Assembly: GCF_037042905.1 (NCBI RefSeq)
Contig: NC_087257.1
Coordinates: 21,762,001 to 21,826,000, forward strand
DNA length: 64,000 bases
Direction: 5' to 3'
Origin: Lytechinus pictus
Lineage: Eukaryota
A model generated the notes under the pieces. The model worked only from the letters and a program-made list of their open reading frames with translations. It did no database searches and was not told the DNA's origin. Position numbers and translations under genes: made by a program. Shown one piece after another: positions 623 through 20,706 of the stretch. How positions within the stretch are numbered: position 1 is the first letter of the stretch; the number at the start of each line of letters is the position of its first letter.

Positions 623-3600
623 TTAAATATCAGAAGGTTGGAGGTTCAAATCTCTGGCGGGAGTAGAGGACACGATAGGCTGCCATTCCGACTGGATGTC
701 ATCAGGTCGCTTCCAAGGGGCAAAGGTCACAACGAAGGTCACGACTGCTGCCAGAAAGAGGATGACCAAACCTAGGAAGTTGGCCACATAGGCTTCTGGT
801 GGACGCGAGGAATACGTTGTTGATCTGGTTTGGGAATGAAAATGGATAGGGATGGTAAAATAATGATGAAAGGGACTGGAAAGGTGGACGAGATGTTTCA
901 AACGACAATTTGTTTTGCTTTGTTTCTTGTTGGTTGTTTGTTAGGACAATCAACTACATATTCCAGAAAAGTATACGTATTATACTTTGTCAGGAATCCC
1001 TTATGATATGAAGATAAGAAGACAAGTACTTATGTTTATCATGGATCATTAAAGATAACGGTTAATGTTTTGTTTTTACCGAAACATCAACAAGATATTA
1101 CAACAATCAACTTTTAAATTACTGTTTCTCATCAGACAATGTCCAATTAAGATCTACAAACATAAAATGGAAAGAGTACCAGTTGGATTTTGAACTTGGT
1201 GCCTCATATAAACTGTCGAATGCTTTAGAATTATAAAGGTTAAAATTATGATGTTTCAATGTTAGAATTTAAATGATTATGTATAACGTCTTGAAAAAAA
1301 TGATTTTCTTTTCCACGGGCCACTTCACTTACATTGCCAGCATCAGTTTGTCTTCAATGCCGATGAGGGCAGTAGCACACGCACCGCCGAACAGAAAGAC
1401 ACCAAAGAATACATGGAGAGGCTTGTACCTATCTCGATGCTGTAGACTTGCACATGGAAATGCGAATATGGATAGCCCGATGAACCACTGCATCAAAGAT
1501 GTGAAAAAATAGTAATCATAATTCATCATACATTCTGAGCGACTACAGACTGACATAGCACCAATCCACATTCCCCTATACATTCTGAACAAATCCCTCG
1601 ACATTTTACCGATCCATACTGTCTTCACACTGACATAGCACCAATCCACAGTGCCTCGATTCTGAATGACTCCACACTGACATAGGACCGATCCACAATG
1701 GCTCCATACATTCTGAATAACTCCACACTGACATAGCACTGATCCACACTGCCATCATACATTCTGAATATCGCCACACTGACATAGCACTGATCCAAAC
1801 TGCCTTCATACATTCTGTATGACTCCACACTGAGATAGCAACGATCCACACTGCATACATACATTCTGAATGACTCCACACTGACATTGCACCGATCCAC
1901 ACTGCCTTCATACATTCTGAATGACTCCACACTGACATTGCACCGATCCACACTGCCTTCATACATTCTGAATGACGCCACGCTGACATTGCACAGATCC
2001 ACACTGCCTTCATACATTCTGAATGACTCCACACTGACATTGCACCGATCCACACTGCCTTCATACATTCTGAATGACTCCACACTGATATTGCACCGAT
2101 CCACACTGCCTTCATACATTCTGAATATCGCCACACTGACATTGCACCGATCCACACTGCCTTCATACATTCTGAATGACTCCACACTGACATTGCACCG
2201 ATCCACACTGCCTTCATACATTCTGAATGACGCCACTCTGACATTGCACCGATCCTCACTGCCATCATACATTCTGACTGACTCCACACTGACATTGCAC
2301 CGATCCACACTGCCTTCATACATTCTGACTGACGCCACACTGACATTGCACCGATCCACACTGCCTTCATACATTCTGAATGACGCCACACTGACATTGC
2401 ACCGATCCACACTGCCTCCATACATTCTGAATAATTCCACACTGACATTGCACCGATCCACACTGCCTTCATACATTCTGAATGACGCCACACTGACATT
2501 GCACCGATCCACACTGCCTCCATACATTCTGAATAATTCCACACTGACATAGCACCGATCCTCACTGCCATCATACATTCTGACTGACTCCACACTGATA
2601 TAGCACCGATCCACGCTGCCTTCATACATTCTGAATGACTCCACACTGACATAGCACCGAGCGATCCACACTGCCTTCATACATGCTGAATGACTCCACT
2701 ATCATATTGAACCGACTTGCCTCCACACCATTCTGAATGACTCCATACTGATATAGCACCAATCCACACTGTCTCCACACCATTCAAAATGACTCCACAC
2801 TGACATAGCACCGATCCACACTGCCTTCATACATTCTAAACAAGAATGATTCATCGTGCTTACCTGAATGACGTACATTATGAAGACCGTTATCCCGATC
2901 CAGCTATGGATGGAGTAAACGTTCGGTATACCATTGGCGTTGTGGTACTGCCATACCGCCACCAGGGCCAGGCATGCGCAGAAAAGGGCCAGACAGTGAA
3001 AGATTACATGAGCCGCTTTGACCCACGCTTTTGGCGTTTCCCGACAGGCACGGTAGAGCATCAGAGCTAATGGGGAGAAATAATGANNNNNNNNNNNNNN
3101 NNNNNNNNNNNNNNNNNNNNNNNNNNNNNNNNNNNNNNNNNNNNNNNNNNNNNNNNNNNNNNNNNNNNNNNNNNNNNNNNNNNNNNNNNNNNNNNNNNNN
3201 NNNNNNNNNNNNNNNNNNNNNNNNNNNNNNNNNNNNNNNNNNNNNNNNNNNNNNNNNNNNNNNNNNNNNNNTAAAGAGTGGAGTGCATCAGAAAACGTCT
3301 CTATGCGCTTGGCATATACATTGGAAGGATATTTTTTACAGGGGTTTCCATACTAGTTATATAAAAATACTAATAAAAAAGAATATTTTTACGGTCTCCT
3401 GGTAAAGACTTTTATGATTCTCAACATTATATCTCCGAATCATTACAAAGGAAGTAAATAAAATTATCTAGAAAGGGGAGCAGGATAAATAATACATCAG
3501 TTTGCAAAAAATAACTTAATAAATATTAAATCTGTTTTGGGGTGATCTGGGGACGGACAATAAACTATTCATTTCATCTTTTCGTTGAACTTAGTCGGTT

Positions 3601-8783: not shown

Positions 8784-9334
8784 AAACTTTTGTATCCTAG
8801 AATAATAAATACAATTATAATCGATGAATACATACCAATCTCATTAATGGGAAAATTGTAGCCTCACAAATAGAAATCTATTAACAATTAATGGCAAGTT
8901 TCAATCATAAATTTTGAGTTGACTGATAGATCTGAACTTAAGCATATACAATTATTACATTCTGTTGGAGGAAGCAGCACAACATTAATAAATAATTATT
9001 AATATTGGGACCTAACATTAGACTTGCAGTGGAGTGCAGTTCTTGGCAATGCCCCCTTTTTAATAGTCAAAGAAACCAAGTAAACACTATTTAGGCCTAT
9101 ACATAACGATCATCTGGGATAATGGAATAATGCAATGTATAAATGAAAACTGTAGATGTAGGTCATGATTTCACATTTTACATGATCTCTAGATAAATAA
9201 TATACATGTAAAGAGAAATGTAAGGCAAGGTAAGTTTATGAAATGTTTGGTTAGACCATATTAAATTTCAGGCTTAAGCTATACAAGCCTTCACTAATAC
9301 AGTAGATCTTTTACGGAACATGTTGAAATAAAAG

Positions 9335-10430
9335 TTTTCTAGTCCTTAGTTAATATGACCTCTTTTAATCTCATCAGGTCTAGATTCTTCATCTTGATCA
9401 CCTTGCAAAGTGGGAAAGATCAAGTTAAGTTCAGGGGGATGTTTCACAAAGATTTAAGTATGACTTAGCGTCGAACTTAAATGCCTAGTTGCATGTGGTA
9501 TAAAAGGCTTAACCGCATTGGTCGGATCATGCAATGAGGACGCACACTACTGCGTATCAATCAATAAGATCGCGCGTTGCACATCATGTACGTGTCGGCA
9601 TTTAAGCGCGACTCTAAGTCATACTTAAATCTTTGTGAAACACCCCCCAGTTTTGCATTAGTTCTGAAGTGACAGCTCACATTTTAAGCTAATTTATAGG
9701 ACCTCCAATAATCTTGTCACATGTAGATCCATATAGTACATCCTATACTTCAGCACTTCCTTTATACATGTAACAAGGACAAGTGAAACTTCAGTTCAGA
9801 GTTGCATTGGTTCTGTAGTCATAGCCCACATTTTTAAAGACTTCTTATAATCTCACCAGGTCTATACCTCTATGGTATATGGTGATTCTTAACCTTGGGC
9901 TACTCCTGTTAAAACAAGGCCAAGTGCAAGTTCAATTCTGACTTGCATTGGTTCTGCAGTCATGGCTCATACTTCTCAAAGTCATCTTATAGTCCTAATG
10001 GGTCTACACCTCTCTAACAGATCTTTACACTTGAGCACCCCATTTAAAACAAGGGCAAGTAGAAGTTTAGTTCTGACTCACATTGGTTCTTCTACAGTCA
10101 TGCCTCAGCCTTTTAAGCCCTCTTATAGTCCCACCTGGTCTAGACCTCTACAGTTTATGGTGATCCTTAACCTTGCGCTACTTCCTAAAACAAGGCCATA
10201 TATAAGTTCGATTCAGCCTTCAGTTGGTTCTGCAGTCATGGCCCATATTTTTCAAAGACCTCTTATAGTTCCATTATAGGGTCAAGCCCTATGGATCAAA
10301 TCCTAAACATGGACCATCTTGAAAACAATGTCAAAACTTCAGGTCAATCTTGCGTTGATTCCGCTGTAATGGCCCTCTTTTTCAGTCTGTTCAAGAGTCC
10401 TCCCGTTATCTGATCGAGTCTAGACCGACG
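9335..10430. repeat. Degenerate ~140-bp tandem array (~7 units) overlapping the CDS end and 3' UTR of the AT-hook gene
   Basis: Anchor TTGGTTCT-like motif at 9658, 9807, 9948, 10083, 10224, 10355; shared GGTCTAGAC and AAAACAAGG blocks. Confidence 0.8.
9435..9647. mobile_element. PIF/Harbinger-like MITE inserted in the 3' UTR array
   Basis: ~50-bp TIRs (GGGGATGTTTCACAAAGATTTAAGTATGACTTAG... / ...CTAAGTCATACTTAAATCTTTGTGAAACACCCCC); 3-bp TSD CAG. Confidence 0.85.
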
Positions 10431-13400
10431 GGCGGGATCAGGAACTTTAACACCTTTGGAATCATTCATCCCAATTTGGGCTAGTTTGACGGATCCTTCC
10501 CTGATTCCTTCACTTGGTATGAGATTCACATCCGGTTCCAATGCTAGATGGCTACTATCGTTTGTCTCCACCTGAATCACAGACTGAATAAGAACGAGAC
10601 ATTAACTTTCACAGGGAATTGGACGCCTGAAGGGTGTGTCCCAATAACAGTTATTGTCTAATACCCAGAGTGGTATCAAGTTTCATTATGTCATTGGATG
10701 GGCGATTATCACATGTGAGATATCCCCCTTAAATAAAGCCCTTCCTCAGTGTTTGCACAAGAAAAATATAGGCCTATGCTTTTTTTATTCAGGAAGTAAA
10801 TAAAATGTTGACACTTATTCATTTAATAAGATATAACTACATGTATGCATTGTAAGCCAAATTTTGACATATCATGTAAATAACATTTTCTATTAAAGTG
10901 ACAAATTTCACAACATCATTGCTCATATCAGCTACCAACTTGCAACAAAAAAGCCCCATGCCTTTGCAACTCTTTACTTTCGCCTCATACCCCATACATT
11001 TGTACACAATAGATGCTGAAGCACTACTTACACCCGGGTCTGCGCTATCTGATGGGGGTGATTCTGGTTGATTCTGTATCGTCTGGACCCTCTCATCATT
11101 GAGCATCACCTCCCCATACAGAACAGATGAATGTGGATAAGAACCCTTCTCTGGAGTGTGTGGGTAGACCACTGTCTCAAGGTCACCTTCTCCAACTACC
11201 GGTAAAAACCTGTCCGACGGTTCAAGCAAACCATCATCCTGCATAGTGGCCATAGGTGCGTTACCGATCACCGACATTTGACTGAAGTTTGATAGTCTAC
11301 AAGATGGAACTATTAAGCTCTCCGGTTGGGATGGCTGAAAGTAAACACCATCGTTTGGAGTTTCTATTCTTTCGTCGGAACTAGAGGCAATGTCTTGAAG
11401 ATCGCTCCTCACTGACAGTGACTGGTCGGGCGAGGTTATGGCATTGAAGGATTGTGCAAGGGCTCTGGAGAATGCTAACCGTGCTGATCTAACAGACGGT
11501 GAGAGATGAGAGAGGTCTTCATCAGGTATGGGTAGCCTCCCAGGGGGACTTTCAGGCATGGCTCTAGGTATCTGAGGTGATGCAACGCTAGTTATTCTTG
11601 TGGGGTATTGGACAGCAGGTGCGATAGGTACTGTTCTCTGGACCTTCCTGGAATTGAGTCTGCCAGGTGGACGACCTCGCTGTAAATACAAAAACAAAAC
11701 AAATTACCTTATTCAAAAGGATCTTTTTAAAGACGCCTTCTCTCCTCAACTTGCATCTTCCATATTATCTTCGGCTGTCCCCTACTCCTCAAACAACCCA
11801 ACTCTAACTCAAAACAAAAAGTCCTACTTAAAACATGCCCTCAGCACTTGCCCACACCACTGCATCAACTGGTACATCACTTCTTCCAAACCTAATACCT
11901 GCATCTAATCTTCCATCCTCTTCTTGTCTATCAACTTCTTGCCACATCACTCTCACCATTGCTCTCTCTCTCTCTGCACTCCTCAAAGTCCCTATCTCAT
12001 TTTCTCTCAAACATGTCTCACTCCCATAGTATACACCATCTTCAAGCTTACACAACATCTTACACACCATCCCTTGATCATAAAAGAAAATATTTCCCCC
12101 AAAACAACCTCCCTAAACTGTACATATATTGTATTCAGAATATATATTAACAAAATGAAATCAAATGAATTGAATATAAAAGCATATTAATTCATAGAGT
12201 AGGCTCACCTTTCGTTTTGGTTTCTCCTCATAAACTTGTACCACTTGTAGTTTAACAGGTTCTCTGCAGGAAAGAGAAAAAAAATCAAAAGTGGTATCAT
12301 TTAGGACATGTCCAAGTGAAAAGTGCATACAATAACTCTTAAAGACTACTGACATGATTGTTGCAGTTACTGGACTGTTACCCACAGATTTAGCTGCTAT
12401 GCAATTTGAATTACTGTATCACAGAATAGTGATATTCCCATTAGCTATGTGTACATGAGAATTGCCTGCCACAGTAATAGAAATGGCCTTCTATGTGATC
12501 CTGACGAGTACTACATTGAGAATTTATCATTTTGTCGCTGAGGTGTTAAAATCTTGTATCTCAAAATGGGAAAAATTGCAGAAAGCATCTAAAAAGATGT
12601 ATTTAAGATATGACATTGTTAGTAACAGCCTTCTTTTACCTAGAGAGAATTTTCTAAAGGAATCAGGAGACCACTTTCAGACATGAAGTTGCATCCACTG
12701 CCCAATGTCTTTAAAGGGATGCTCTGGGCTGAAGATATTTTATCTCAATAAATAAAGTAAAATTCACAGAGCAAAATGCTGAAAATTTCATCAAAATCGG
12801 ATAACAAATAACAAAGTTATTGAATTTTAAAGATATGCATTATTTCGGTGAAACAGTTCTAAGCATGTCTTCATGAATATTCATTGGGTGGGCTGATGAT
12901 ATCATATCCCCACTTGTTCTTTTTGTATTTTATTATAAGAAATTAAGTTTATTAAAAAATTTTCTATGAAGAACTAAAACAATTGGATTGACAACTGATT
13001 TAGTGCATTAGTTATTTCTTGCTGCAACGTAATTTCATCATAATGGAGATGCATCATTTACACATTTATGAAAAAATTAAATAATTATGATTTCATGTAA
13101 TGACATAAGAAAAAGGAAAATGGGGATGTGACATCATCAGCCCACCTAATGAAAAATTCATGAAGACATACCTAGAACTGTTTCATTGTAATAATGCAAT
13201 TTTTTTAAATTCAATAACTTTGTTATTTGTTAATCCGATTTTGATGAAATTTTCAGCATTTTGCTCTGTGAATTTTACTCTACTAATTTAATACCTTCAG
13301 CCTGGAATACCTGTATCCCTTTAACCCATTGCCTAGTGGAAATAATGATCCCTTTACAAAGCCTCTATGAATCACATAATTCAGTAGTAAACAGGTAAAC

Positions 13401-16400
13401 AAAGTTTTTATCTGAGCTGCCCTTGATTTTTTTATTTATTTATTTGACAAGTTTGAACAACCCAGTGGCAGTGATGACAAACTTTACATTATTTCTAACC
13501 TGTAAAGGTGGTCATTTCTTTGATCAAGTAATTCCAAGGACAAGGGTGTTTGGAAAGGAGCAAGCACACTCTCATCTTGATACTCATCTGCATGATCACT
13601 GAAACTGAAAAAAAGGAAAAACAAGAACATTTAATATCTGATACACAATAATAAAGAAATTTAATCAAAGGCACGTCAAGGTCATGGCCTTAATGCCCTG
13701 CTCACTTGACTCGAGATATTTTGATACCCTTCTCAATTTTCCCCCAACTGTGCTGTTATTAAAAAAAGTGCCAAACTATATGTGCCCTTGCCCTAAAATA
13801 AGCAAAGTTTAGGGCCTATAAGAACAACAAGTGGAACGCCTCTGGTAGTCTCGCCTGCATTACGCGATTTAATATAGCAGCAGTGCTAACTTTGAGAACT
13901 ACTATAAAATAATCATTCACAAAAACACCATTCATATAATGACATAATACCACATTCATTGACCATAAATGACATTTGAACGGTGACTTAAGACTTGTCA
14001 ACTACACCCATGTCCACATTTCATTCACTCTATCCATAAACTTTCAAAGTTATGATGGCAATTCAACAATTACCCCAACATAGCCTAAGTTTATTGACCT
14101 TAACTGACCTTTGACCTTGTTTTGGGACCTTAAACTCACAGGGGATGTTCAGTGATACTTGATTACTCTTATGTCCAAGTTTTATGAAGTAGATCCATAA
14201 ACTTTCAGAGTTAGGATGGTAATTTAACAAATACCCCCAACACGGAGTTCATTGACCTTAAATGACCATTGACCATGGTCATGTGACCTGAAACTCGCAC
14301 AGGATATTCAGTGGTACTTGATTAACCTAATGTCCAAATTTCATGAACTAGATCCGTAAATTTTCAAAGTTATGATGGTAATTCAACAAATACACCCAAC
14401 TTGGCCAAAGTTCATTGACCTTAAATGACCTTTGACCTTGGTAATGTGACCTGAAACTCGGGCAGGATGTTCACTAATACTTGATTAACCTTATGTCTAA
14501 GTTTCATGAACTAGATCCATAAATTTTCAAAGTTATGATAGTAATTCAACAAATACCCCCAACTTGACCAAAGTTCATTGACCCTAAATGACCTTTGACT
14601 TTGATCACGTGAAACTCAAGCAGGATGTTCACTAATACTCGATTAACCTTATGCTTAAGTTTCATGAACTAGGTCCATATACTTTCTAAGTTATGATGTC
14701 ATTTCAAAAACTTAACCTTCGGTTAAGATTTTGAAAATAATTCTCCTAACATGGTCTAAGTTCATTGACCCTAAATGACCTTTGACCTTGGTCATGTGAC
14801 CTGAAACTCAGGCAGGATATTAAGTAATACTTGATTAATCTTATGTTAAAGTTTCATGAACTAGGTCGATATACTTTCTAAGTTATGATGTAATTTCAAA
14901 AACTTAACCTTAGGTTAAGATTTGATGTTGACGCCGCCGCCGTCGGAAAAGCGGCGCCTATAGTCTCGCTCTGCTATGCAGGCGAGACAAAAACAACAAT
15001 TTTTAACAAGTGGAATATGTTTGGCAGTCTTGCCTGTATTGTATGTAAAATGTCTGATTTTGCTGTCCGCAATTCTTACTTGTTCACTAGTTGCAGGGAG
15101 TCCTGACATGGTAGCCATGCATATTCCCCAAAATGTTTTCATAAGGGTTTGATTTCCAACCATAAGGCAGTGTCAACATTTGTTGGAAAAGGGTGTTTTG
15201 TTTTTAAGAAAAGAGGTGAGGGCCTACTGTTTAGCAGGTCCTTCAATGTTTACAACATTTAGGGGTAGATATTTTACATACTCTTTACGCCATTTATGCT
15301 GTTTATGGGTAAATTTGACACCAAGGATATATTTTGGGGTACCCTGGAGTAAAGCCTTACCTTAGACATAAATGAAAAATTGTGAAGATAGGACTTTGTC
15401 TAAAATTGAATTAACTCTAGGTCTCTACTCAATAAATCTATCCATCTAAATAACAAACATGCCAATGAGTCTCACAGGGTACTCCGAGCTGAAATATATT
15501 TATACCTAAATAAATAGAATAAAATCAACAAAGCCAAGTGCTGAAAATTTCATCAAAATCTGATAACAAATAACAAAGTAATTGAGATTAAAAGTTTAGC
15601 AATATTTGTGAAAACAGTTATACAGTGCGTCCCAGAAAAATCAAAACCGAGATTCATCGATGATTTATCATAACTTATTCTTTATCAAATTCATAAATGA
15701 CCTATTATTTTAAAGCTTAGAATCTCCTCTTTCATTTAATGAAATCAATATGACCAAGATGTTACGCATGAATGAGTAAAAACAATTTGAAAAGAGAAAA
15801 ACAAAAAGTCGTTTGGCGGGCGGTATCTGAATTTTTTCTTTTAAATCTACATTTTTCAAAAGTCCATCTTTTGCCCTTTAAGATGACACCAAAACCAACA
15901 AAATTGCTTCACAAATAAAAAAGTTATGCTAATTTGAAATAGTGCTCGCATTTCAATAATTTCACCCAATAAATTTGTTCAACTATTGCCCGTCCTAGCA
16001 CTAGACAAAGGTAACAAAAGAAATTATGCTTGGGTGATTTCCAGTGAAAGTAACTGGCTAGTCAGTGTTAATTAAGCGAGCTGAGAATTATTATCGTTAT
16101 CACCTTCTGTTTTAACATGCAATTAACTACAGACGAACTAGTATTTCTTGTAACAGAGTGGGGACAATCTGAGAGCCTTCAGCAAGTTGCTGAGGCTTTT
16201 CGATGTTGCTTCCCCGGTCAACAGGTACCAGCCAAGTCAACTATTTGGCGCAACAGAAGAAAATACCAAGAAGAGGGTATGAGTCTGAACTTGAACAAGG
16301 GTAGGTCGGGTCGGAGGAGAACGGTTAGGTCTGCTGACAACATCGATCGTGTAAGGCGCACTCTGGAGCAGAACCCACACCTATCTGCAAGAAGGAATGG

Positions 16401-19400
16401 AATGGGAATATCCAAGTTGTCATTCTAACAAATCGTCAGGACCGACATCAAGTGGTACCCATTTCGCATGATATGCCGTCATCAACTTTTACCTGGTGAC
16501 CTACCAAGGAGACGAGTGGCTGCTGGCGAGAGGCCCACGGTTCATTACAAATATTGTGATAGGAGATGAAGCATCTTTCTTCATGAATGGGCGAGTAAAC
16601 AGTCAGAACGTGGTGGTGAATCACCACCATTCCACTTTGATTGCAATATCTCACGAGAAAAGCTATCGGTCTGGATGGGAATGTGTGGGAATGGAGTGCT
16701 GATTGGCCCTATTTTCTTCAATAACAACCTCGACGGAAACGGCTATCTTCGCATCATCAACGAAAAGAGATCGTTCCTCACTTGGAAGCACTTTTCCCGC
16801 GCCAGGAAGATGGTAGCTTCAGTGAGATATGGTGGATTCAAGATGGGGCTCCAGCTCATCGCAGAAACCTCGTGACGGAACGGTTGGCTGAGCTCTTCAA
16901 TGAGAGGGTGGTCGCAACTCATCATCCTGTGGAGTGGCCTCCTAGATCCCCCGACCTCACGCCATGCGACTTCTTCTTGTGGGGCTACCTAAAGAACAAG
17001 GTGTTCATGAGCCCACCGTTTGACCTAGCAGACCTTCGGAGGAGAATCGTTGCTGAAGTCGAGTCTCTACGACAGCATCCTCGCACGATCTGCCATGCCA
17101 TGAGAGCCATGGTATCCCATGCAGAACTATGTGTTGAAAGGAACGGCGGCCACGTTGAAACACGATGAATAAAATAAGGAAAGAACTTACTTATGAACCA
17201 CATACGTTAATAAAGTGAAAAAATGTGTGTTTATGAATCTCTTTTTGGTCACCATCTTTTTTTTAAACAAGCAAAAGTGAGAGAGGTCGATTGAAAATGT
17301 TTGTGGAAAAATTCAGAGGGGGGGGGGGTTGAGAAAAATGGGATAAGAGTGAATTGAGTTAATTTACCGTGATTGGGAAGGGCAAAGGGATGAACAGAGA
17401 AAATAACAATCGGAGTTGAAGGAAAAAAGATCGATTATTTGATCATGATAATCATAATAACAAAGAAAAGCTCACTGAGTGGCAGATCCATGGGGGGTAG
17501 ATGATCAAAACCCTTCCCCCGTCCCTTTAGCTGCCAAGTAAAAGTAACTACATACATATTGGAGCCAACCCCAAATTACCTCTTTTTTTTTGGGGGGGGG
17601 GGGGCTTGTGAAATTGTCGGTCAATTCCCCTCCTTGGAAAAAAGCTAGATCCAACTCTGAAAGTCATTTAGTTTTCTGTAAATTACACAGCTTAAATAGG
17701 GTCAAAATTATATCACAATCAGAAAGAGAGCTTAATAAATATTATTCTGATATTTCATTGGTAATCATCCATGCATTAATTCTTTTCTTACCTTTGTCTC
17801 TTGCTAGTATGTGCAACAGTTGAAAATAATTATTGAGTGAAATTATTGAAATGCAAGTACTATTTTAAATGAACATAACTTTTTTATTTGTGAAGCAATT
17901 TTGTTGGTTTGGTGTCATATTGAAGTGCAGAAAATGGACTTTTATAAAATGTAGATTTCAGAGAGAATTTCAGATACCGCCCGCCAAACGACTTTTTGGT
18001 CTCCTCTCTTCAAATTGTTTTTACTCATTCATCCGTGACACATTGGTCATATTGATTTCATTAAATGAAAGAGGAGATTATAAGCTTTAAAATGGTGGGT
18101 CATTTGTGAATTTTGATAAAGAATAAGTTATGATAAATCATCAATCAATCTCGGTTTTGTTTTTTCTGGGACGCACTGTATGCACATTATCATGAATATT
18201 AATTAATTAGGTGGGCTGATGATGTCATATCCCAACTTTCCTTTTTCTTATGTGATTACATGAAATCATAATTATTTCACTTTTTTCATACAAATTTGAA
18301 TGATATCTCTCCCTTATGATAAAATAAGTTGCAGGATTGAATATCTAGATTCTAACGCACTAACATTAGATCTAAATCAGTTGTACATTAAATTTTTTTT
18401 AGTTTTGGGCGAAAAAATTAATAAACCTAATTTCATATAATAAAATACAAAACAAGCGGGGATATGACACCATCAGTTTGCCAATTGAATATTCATGAAG
18501 ACAGGCACAGAACTATTTGACAGAAATTATGCAAATCTAGGCCTAGTTAAAAATGTCAATTTGTCATAACTTTGTTATTTCTTAATAATAATCATTGTCT
18601 GATTTCGATCAAATTTTCAGTATTTTGTTTGTCTGATAACTTTATTTTCATCTAGGAGTATACATGTAGTCACGTATTACCGGACACTATCATGATTCCG
18701 GACGTGCATATTCCTGCGTACGAAAACAATTTCGTACCGTAAGACTTCCGCAATTCAATTTCACAGAGCAATACATAGAACAAGATTGCAAAAACAAGGA
18801 GGAAAAAATCAAACTTTTACCTTACTTATTTCTAAAAATGATAGAAAATGCTTATATGTGCAGTGTTTTGCATGAACAATTATTGATGTATTTTTTTATG
18901 GAAATATGGGCCTGATTTGCCGAATTTCAATCTCGTCCGCTCCTTCAATCGAAAGTTCAGGTATGGTGTAATGTGGGTGATCGTCGACGGCTAGCTAAGG
19001 TATTCCTGTGTGCAAGGTTTACCGCGATTATTAGAGCTGTCGACGATCGACAGCGCATCGATAGAACTTAAGTTGATGAGCGTCATGATACAAACGAGCA
19101 TAACATTGGAAAGTGCCATTGATCATGGAGCTAACAAGAAAAAATAAAATCAGTTAGCAAACAAAATTTTATTACCAACATCTGCTCAGATTCGGTATGA
19201 AAAAAGCAAACAAAAACTTAAAATTTACGCATGATATGATGTATGAAGAAAAAAATCACACAAATTCTTTCTTGCATTATGATAATGAAGAATATCTTTA
19301 CCTGTCTGGAATCATGATGTAATTTGTCACACAGGAAAATAATTATTTTTTTATGGAGGGGTATGCGGCAAGTGCTATGCAAAGAAAACGGTTGGTTAAT

Positions 19401-20426
19401 ATAAAATAATTTTATCATATTCATAATTTTCATATTTGGAATAGTAAGTGCAAAAGTGTCCGGTAATAGGATACACTGCCATTACTTTTTAGACCAAAAG
19501 CTTCGGACTCTGTTGATATGTTGGTTGTTCCGCTGAACCCGGTTGGCTCCACTCACCAAATACAGAGACCGAAGTTCTAGCGCGATTTGTACAGGGGACT
19601 CAGTCAATGGCCATATGTTTATGTATTAAGTTCGGATAAAACAGGGAAGTGAAGTTGCGCGACAGCCGAACTGCCCGAAGTAAGTCACTGTTTTTTCCCC
19701 CTTTAAAGTTTATTTTTCCCCGTTTTGGTGCATTTCAGGCCATTTCAGGAATAATCTTTATTTTGGTACGGTACAGTTCTTTTTATATATTTTCATGAAA
19801 TAAAGACAAAAATCTACGAGCCCCGACGGGGGGATTTTGCATTGTAAGTCCCCTAATGCCAGTAATGGTAGCTGCACAATAGCGAGCCGTTTGTGTGAGG
19901 AGAAATTAAAAAAATAAAAAAATGTTTAAAAAACTCCTCGAAACAGACGGCTGCCAGCTGTCTACGGCTATACCCTTTAATATTTCTGAATCAATGACAT
20001 CACAATCACATGACTGAATTTACGAAAAACATGCAACTTTGACTCAACGAAAACACGTCAACGACATTGCAAATGCAGCTGTGCAAGGGAAAAAAGACAA
20101 AGCCCGCGCCGAAGCGGAATCAACACCGCAATCTCAACCGGAGCACCGGGGTAGGTGGCAAACCAATTTCCGTACACTTACCATTTCATTAACAACCTTG
20201 CAAAACCATCGTCGCTGTTTACGGTCGCTTTTTCCCTCAGTTTCCTCCATTGTTGGAAAGTTTTCACATGAAGTCGAATTCTTCTTCTGTCTTGTTCAAC
20301 ATCGACCCTTTCTCTATACCTCGCCCGTGCTCTAGCCTGGGAAACTTTCCTTTCCTCGTCTGAAATTCTAGGTCGTCCACGTCCTCTTTTCTTTGGGACC
20401 TCCATTTTTACAAACAATGGCCTCAT
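10344..20426 (-). CDS. Uncharacterised AT-hook protein with ZNF653-like N-terminus, ~430 aa (423 aa from Met at 20405); coding exons 20182-20426, 13500-13604, 12209-12263, 11032-11679, 10344-10583
   Basis: All junctions GT-AG with matching phases (2,2,0,0), total 1293 nt open. AT-hooks KKRGRGRPR and KRK|RGRPPG (spliced across an intron). N-terminal RRIRLHVKTFQQWRKLREK..SDDGFARLL motif; S/P-rich middle. Confidence 0.8.
12715..13320. mobile_element. Kolobok-like palindromic non-autonomous element
   Basis: TTAA TSD at 12711-14 and 13321-24; termini AGGGAT / ATCCCT; >200-bp inverted arms (GCTGAAAATTTCATCAAAATCGGA..., GTGGGCTGATGA...). Confidence 0.85.
13826..14993 (+). mobile_element. Helentron-associated / Pearl-type non-autonomous element with internal ~160-bp tandem array
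   Basis: Subterminal inverted repeat GTCTCGCCTGCAT (13848-60) / ATGCAGGCGAGAC (14976-88); 3' hairpin GTCTCGC..GCGAGAC; ~5.5 internal units; a second truncated start at ~15005. Confidence 0.7.
15623..18178 (+). mobile_element. Tc1/mariner DD41D (rosa/Visitor-group) transposon with ~430-bp long TIRs
   Basis: TA TSD at 15621-22 and 18179-80; TIRs CAGTGCGTCCCAGAAAAA... / ...TTTTTCTGGGACGCACTG extending to ~16049 and from ~17753. Confidence 0.93.
16117..17168 (+). pseudogene. Disrupted DD41D transposase
   Basis: N-terminal HTH-like region (GRSGRRRTVRS), IVIGDEASF, QDGAPAH, WPPRSPDLTPCDFFLWGYLK, NGGHVE. 41 residues between the 2nd and 3rd catalytic D. In-frame stop at 16426-28 plus frameshifts. 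Confidence 0.92.
18668..19478. mobile_element. Non-autonomous TIR element
   Basis: Inverted ends TATTACCGGACACT / AGTGTCCGGTAATA. Confidence 0.55.
19480..19980 (+). repeat. ~500-bp dispersed repeat, copy 1 (Kolobok-like CCCTTTAA end)
   Basis: Closely similar to 37795-38300. Confidence 0.85.
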
Positions 20427-20535
20427 AGTCTACCTTCAAGCCGCGCTCAATCACGTTTGTTTGCATCAATAAATTGGAGAATGACAGAAAATTTTTACTA
20501 TTACCCTTACATTGCATTTTAGAATAGTGCTGCGA

Positions 20536-20706
20536 GTCATCATCATCAACATCATTATCATCATCACCACCATCGCCATCATTCATTTCCATCACAGTTA
20601 TCATCATCATCATCACCATCCACATCATCATCAATTCATCATCACCATATTTTCTTCATTATTATATCGTCACCATCATCATCATCATTTTATATCATCA
20701 CCATCA
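20536..20706. repeat. (CAT/CAC)n microsatellite upstream of the AT-hook gene
   Basis: Direct inspection. Confidence 0.9.

Follow-up and report, generated by a model that had tools for sequence, protein, structure and literature searches.

A tandem array behind the stop codon of a sea urchin AT-hook gene, probably derived from the coding end of that gene

The window considered here is a stretch of 64,000 nucleotides from Lytechinus pictus (assembly GCF_037042905.1, contig NC_087257.1, positions 21,762,001 to 21,826,000 of the forward strand), numbered from its first base; a run of 185 N occupies 3087-3271. On its minus strand lies an AT-hook gene, LOC129275291, whose translation equals the 430-aa RefSeq protein XP_063964657.1 in the C-terminal part, the residues SVIQ included. 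RefSeq also lists a 426-aa form without SVIQ. The difference lies in a pair of acceptors at the last coding exon, 12 nt apart (ttattcag, then TCTGTGATTCAG, then GTGGAG), which add or omit these residues. Comparisons at the protein level were made with the annotated RefSeq proteins. Five annotated proteins, from three species, all stop at the identical residue. The L. pictus assembly holds a single copy of the gene, at 10344-20426; NCBI lists two entries, LOC129275290 and LOC129275291, with proteins 97% identical, which may be the two haplotypes of one gene.

The protein has few recognizable relatives. Pfam returned no family for three exons of the gene, a protein atlas search gave a match at chance level only, and protein searches by word and by exhaustive HMMER comparison found the gene in Lytechinus and Strongylocentrotus only, with no outgroup among them that lacks the array described below. 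A word search with the last exon by itself (81 aa) had no match, an outcome that its length filter and the scarcity of short ORFs account for. Identity between the L. pictus and S. purpuratus proteins is 52-57% over the query regions. No other part of the protein is as well conserved as the C-terminal tail, where 34 of 39 residues are identical.

That tail opens a repeat. Read on the minus strand, the DNA from 10464 to ~9339 is a diverged tandem array with a period of ~137 bp, six units followed by a partial seventh, arranged head-to-tail at a single locus of ~0.9 kb, with unit lengths of 132-143 bp (Table 1). A sequence-only reading of the window had proposed a tandem array of ~140 bp, and self-comparison bears it out: blastn of the minus strand aligns 10384..9648 with itself at offsets of 130, 272, 407 and 548, with 64-73% identity and E values from 1e-63 to 4e-5, and nhmmer with a unit profile recovers the six units and the partial one, its matches to U1, U3 and U5 ending at 10161, 9884 and 9382. 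With the MITE that interrupts U5 excised, spacings between successive occurrences of the anchor GGTCTAGAC are 137, 143, 136, 142, ~135 and 136; at the anchor chosen in the sequence-only reading they are 131, 138, 138, 141 and 149. Tandem Repeats Finder reported no repeat for the region. As the copies are merely 52-80% alike in pairwise comparison, that blank result is no argument against the array.

Table 1. The gene, the array and its Strongylocentrotus counterpart. Coordinates are those of the window, except where prefixed L007 (the S. purpuratus locus).
Feature	Coordinates	Strand	Remarks
Last coding exon	10583 or 10571 to 10344	-	TGA stop 10346-10344; acceptors 12 nt apart
Upstream exons	~20426-20185, 13618-13490, near 12240-12184, 11679-11032	-	
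U0, cross-species phase	10328..10464	-	last 39 codons (DSKGVKVPDPARRSRLDQITGGLLNRLKKRAITAESTQD) + TGA + 16 nt; putative founder segment of the array
U0, phase of the GGTCTAGAC anchor	10291..10427	-	27 codons + stop + 53 nt; used for statistics; nhmmer E = 5e-28
U1, non-coding	10148..10290	-	92% identity to L. variegatus U1
U2, non-coding	10012..10147	-	from nhmmer, unit alignment and unit tree
U3, non-coding	9870..10011	-	nearest kin U1 (80%); ATCACC indel common to both
U4, non-coding	9732..9869	-	from nhmmer and pairwise identity
U5, MITE-interrupted	9385..9731	-	parts 9731-9648 and 9434-9385; retains ~9-nt segment gone from U1-U4
U6, partial final unit	9339..9384	-	nhmmer E = 2e-8; contains first ATTAAA past the stop (9369-9364)
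MITE, 213 bp, within U5	9435..9647		terminal inverted repeats ~50 bp; target-site duplication probably 3 bp (CTG)
S. purpuratus U0	L007:16627-16762		last 39 codons + TGA + 15 nt
S. purpuratus U1	L007:16763-16898		intact frame + stop; 8/149 aligned nt differ from U0 (94.6% identity)

The first unit of this array is the end of the gene itself, as the sequence-only reading had claimed. Local alignment scores of the last 38 coding bases against the other units stand far above those of shuffled sequence (z = 10.4, equalled in 0/1000 shuffles), and those of the stop codon with the 54 bases after it (57 in all) stand clearly above it too (z = 4.2, 3/1000 shuffles). The 44 coding bases from GGTCTAGAC onward match the units collinearly, to a degree equalled by 0/5000 shuffles and by 0/902 natural 44-mers. 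The outcome that would have told against the claim, failure of the coding end to align with the downstream units, is thus not what these tests gave. The limit of the homology extends further upstream. Coding bases 10464-10428 (37 nt), compared with the 3' ends of units in L. pictus alone, gave a score that was not significant (z = 1.8); compared by way of S. purpuratus, the same bases show clear homology to the array, which carries the limit to 10464. About 89% of the unit is then coding-derived (39 codons and the stop in ~136 nt).

The array is also present at the orthologs in L. variegatus (locus L006) and S. purpuratus (locus L007), each with CCDC47 upstream, and in both it begins inside the last exon. 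The interval that contains the gene is bounded by CCDC47 and the cytochrome b561 gene. In L. variegatus it runs from L006 position 20065 to ~20910 and keeps extra distal remnants; in S. purpuratus it runs from L007 position 16627 to ~17270, with a period of 136, a self-BLAST E value of 2e-89 and offsets of 136, 272, 385 and 518. A single BLAST segment between L. pictus and S. purpuratus, collinear throughout, leaves the last exon, crosses the stop and enters the units that follow, and window 10464-10213 aligns with S. purpuratus U1-U2. The 53 nt after the stop align collinearly between the two species (1/5000 shuffles); the distal 37 of the L. pictus bases also match S. purpuratus coding DNA at 16627-16664, which encodes DSKGVKVPDPTRR (0/5000 shuffles). 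Both species share the junction at which one unit gives way to the next: the stop, ~15 nt, then TGATTYCAAGG. The first duplication is therefore older than the split between the two families, which is itself tens of millions of years old. At sites where the Lytechinus and S. purpuratus coding units disagree, the Lytechinus non-coding units mostly show the S. purpuratus state, as judged by eye from the alignment, and this too fits an old origin.

In S. purpuratus one copy is much fresher than the rest. U1 there retains an intact frame and stop (Table 1), whereas the three further units past it are 74-79% identical to U0. Five of the eight differences between U0 and U1 are non-synonymous. All five changes lie on U1, U0 retaining the Lytechinus residue at each of the sites; that is, the coding unit is constrained while its copy drifts. 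Short-read contigs from two other strongylocentrotid samples (L005 and L008) terminate at an identical base inside U0, both with the closing letters CAGATTACAGGGGGA. Assemblers end contigs in this way at near-identical repeats, which suggests that U0 and U1 are near-identical in those samples also.

The contrast between the coding unit and its copies holds across the array. U0 is under purifying selection: of the codon changes that separate L. pictus from S. purpuratus in its 39 coding codons, 14 are synonymous and 5 non-synonymous, and pN/pS for the 27 codons counted from the anchor is 0.21. The downstream units show no clear constraint and drift near-neutrally at about the rate of the intron. 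Between L. pictus and L. variegatus the non-coding part of U0 is 96% identical, U1 92% and U2 86%, as against 88% for the last intron and 89% for the downstream flank. The reading frames of the older units are broken by stops or frameshifts. In S. purpuratus U3 and U4, 27-codon frames remain open, with pN/pS of ~0.35 relative to U0; with at most 18 differences to count, this is not significantly off what constraint on just one of the two branches would give.

Turnover within the array can be followed through a tree of the units. The non-coding units of Lytechinus fall into one clade (support 90/83). Within it the U1 units of L. pictus and L. variegatus pair up (97/93), with L. pictus U3 next to them (90/94), and the U2 units of the two species form a second pair (93/94). 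The duplication that produced U3, and probably U4, therefore predates the split of L. pictus from L. variegatus. A 9-nt deletion is common to Lytechinus U1-U4 and absent from U5 and from every S. purpuratus unit. The sequence-only reading had also seen a dimeric, higher-order expansion, with alternate units resembling each other more than neighbours do. This stands in part: U1 and U3 are the closest pair of all (80%), share an 8-nt indel and group in the tree, but U2 and U4 are 69% identical, no more than adjacent pairs.

The unit belongs to this locus and to no other in the genome. A 25-nt core of the unit, with up to 3 mismatches allowed, has three matches in the 811-Mb L. pictus genome, all within the array, and a 555-nt query of units returned its own match only. 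A satellite DNA family would occupy many loci or form long arrays, and here the core is confined to one; the array shares with such families the tandem layout and some sign of a higher-order step of two units, and differs from their dispersed or very long arrays in being a single locus of ~0.9 kb. What is seen is what defines a minisatellite, or VNTR: a unit repeated head-to-tail, at one locus, in a copy number that differs between genomes. L. pictus has six copies and a partial one, L. variegatus ~2.7 and the distal remnants after a rearrangement, and S. purpuratus ~5, the variation being that among the three species compared.

Minisatellites in such a position are familiar. The 3' UTR of SLC6A3/DAT1 carries a 40-bp repeat (PMC13064044), and human minisatellite VNTRs have been surveyed genome-wide (PMC8096271). 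With the SLC6A3/DAT1 type the urchin array shares a locus-specific, head-to-tail arrangement past the stop codon and a unit of tens to ~140 bp; with that type and with human VNTRs in general it shares variation of copy number and sequence between related genomes. It differs in that the unit probably comes from the gene's own last 39 codons and stop, with the first unit still serving as the functional coding end, and in that the copies are old and diverged (52-80%) instead of near-identical; the comparison is one between species. A literature search turned up general VNTR papers only, none of which describes this locus. The array looks like an old and ordinary locus-specific minisatellite, not a new kind of element or a new mechanism.

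How the unit came to be shared between a coding tail and the DNA behind it admits of more than one answer. We think it probable, with some room for doubt, that the array is a locus-specific minisatellite that began with the tail of the gene, first duplicated before Lytechinus and Strongylocentrotus parted, and whose later copies have been decaying since. In outline, tandem duplication of a ~136-bp segment (the last 39 codons, the TGA and ~15-16 nt) would have preceded that parting; copies past the first, sitting behind the stop, would go untranslated and decay, leaving the first copy alone under selection at the protein level. Turnover by unequal exchange or slippage would then have proceeded lineage by lineage. 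In Lytechinus a decayed unit with the 9-nt deletion may have been re-amplified to give U1-U4, with a step from U1 (and U2) to U3 (and U4) older than the split of L. pictus from L. variegatus. Transposable elements would have come after: a MITE in L. pictus, and in L. variegatus another dispersed repeat, accompanied by the disappearance of about three units. The S. purpuratus coding unit would have been recopied recently, or would have converted the unit next to it.

The sequence-only reading had left two origins side by side, serial duplication of the C-terminal and stop segment, or a protein that gained its C-terminus by running into a satellite already present. The evidence favours the first, in that ~89% of the unit is coding-derived, the locus is unique, S. 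purpuratus holds a fresh copy at 94.6% identity whose intact frame is drifting, and conservation along the protein is highest in the C-terminal peptide. If this direction is right, the locus offers a clean and datable case of post-stop sequence built from a gene's own coding tail, in which three genomes between them display the founder unit, the common junction, turnover peculiar to each lineage and a fresh re-duplication. It also bears on annotation: arrays of this sort yield spurious small ORFs, false 'alternative C-termini' and breaks in short-read contigs.

The opposite direction, that of a satellite present first, supposes an older non-coding array into whose first unit the reading frame ran for 39 codons, through loss of a stop, a frameshift or a new splice site, the extension then coming under selection. 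We hold this to be unlikely. Homology between the units and the coding tail holds in either direction, and it takes no great luck for a random unit to stay open over 39 codons (a chance of ~0.15, by our own arithmetic as (61/64)^39); a lineage-restricted gene, evolving as fast as the 52-57% identity implies, could conceivably have a young C-terminus. Yet the tail is the slowest part of the protein, not the fastest, with changes mostly synonymous; no reservoir of the unit lies elsewhere in the genome; and the sole event that can be dated, the copying of S. purpuratus U0 to U1, moves coding sequence into a non-coding position. The array moreover begins exactly at a unit boundary within the exon, and in S. 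purpuratus it stops after about five units.

A different kind of question is what the array does once made. Its position past the stop makes it a candidate 3' UTR, and a scan for polyadenylation hexamers is consistent with this. Past the stop, neither AATAAA nor ATTAAA occurs in L. pictus and L. variegatus until the last partial unit, and in S. purpuratus the first of them comes ~190 nt beyond the array; L. pictus has further ones at 9064 (ATTAAA) and 8783 (AATAAA). With no earlier hexamer, a canonically processed transcript would contain nearly the whole array. On these signals in the DNA we take the array for a putative 3' UTR, which the transcript would include. The want of the two hexamers over ~800 nt of such composition is not statistically unusual in itself, having a probability of ~0.3 by chance on our own estimate.

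Two observations could be taken to mean that such a UTR is functional: the array has persisted in two families, and one part of the unit is better kept than the remainder. This core, GCCATGACTGCAGAACCAA, is 16-25 nt long and is 72-84% kept among the non-coding units of both lineages, as against 58% overall (2-8/5000 column shuffles). It is identical in L. pictus U1 (10239-10261) and U3 (9963-9985) and in S. purpuratus U2 (L007:16985-17010), and the non-coding units keep it better than the coding copy of L. pictus itself does. This is not what plain neutral decay would give, though it could come from the common ancestry of the units and from anchoring of the alignment. On the functional reading, units are retained as cis-elements, centred on the core, for an RNA-binding protein or a small RNA, with copy number tuning the stability or translation of the mRNA. 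We find this rather improbable. Against it are the drift of U1 and U2 at about the pace of intron and flank, the transposon-linked rearrangement that cost L. variegatus about three units, the toleration of a MITE in an L. pictus unit, the absence of the core from the rest of the genome, and the fair chance that both hexamers are absent at random. Nor do the units show a signal of RNA structure (z from -0.7 to +1.5) or match any Rfam family, and the suggestion in the sequence-only reading that the array multiplies RNA-binding or miRNA sites finds no support in units that have diverged as intron and flank have.

A bolder form of the same idea can be put forward as a long shot. Two families would have retained the array, over tens of millions of years, by way of a core of ~20 nt acting as a multi-copy 3' UTR cis-element, and the coding unit would periodically re-seed it, as in S. 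purpuratus. If true, the gene builds and renews its own regulatory UTR out of its coding tail.

It is very hard to credit that the downstream units are alternative C-terminal cassettes, used as terminal exons or as a pool of variants which, by exchange with the coding unit, would diversify the tail: S. purpuratus U1 does have an intact frame (DFKVIRVPDP...NAEPTQD*), preceded by tttcaag and GTG in phase with the upstream donor, and the differences in the open frames of U3 and U4 lean synonymous, but the lean is expected when one branch is a selected copy, every amino-acid change between S. purpuratus U0 and U1 falls on U1, stops, frameshifts or the 9-nt deletion mark S. purpuratus U2 and all the Lytechinus units, and every annotated isoform ends in U0. 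As candidate terminal exons, then, only U1, U3 and U4 of S. purpuratus are open at all, the first with its five non-synonymous changes.

On the origin from the coding tail, which we prefer, the insertions are late additions to an array already old. The element inside U5 has what defines a MITE: it is short and non-coding, has inverted ends and a high copy number, and is precisely inserted, with an empty site in a relative. The L. pictus genome holds at least 2026 candidate copies, matching in both orientations across the terminal ~50 bp; the 40 that were scored are full length, 89-91% identical and spread over many chromosomes. In L. variegatus the site is uninterrupted, at L006 ~20572-20590. 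The proposal in the sequence-only reading that a MITE later split one unit is confirmed by these dispersed full-length copies and this empty site. L. variegatus has its own disturbance, in which the DNA from the middle of U2 to the middle of U5, about three units, is lost and a dispersed repeat occupies L006 ~20354-20571. That repeat is unlike the MITE; it is ~190-220 bp long and at times tandem itself, and the L. pictus genome contains at least 2218 candidate copies of it.

Transposable sequences lie elsewhere around the gene as well. The L. variegatus locus contains two further copies of the MITE, at L006:4444-4661 and 16046-16291. In L. pictus, intronic DNA of the plus strand at 16117-17168 holds two open frames, one of which contains WWIQDGAPAHRRNLV, that look by eye like remnants of a Tc1/mariner-type transposase.
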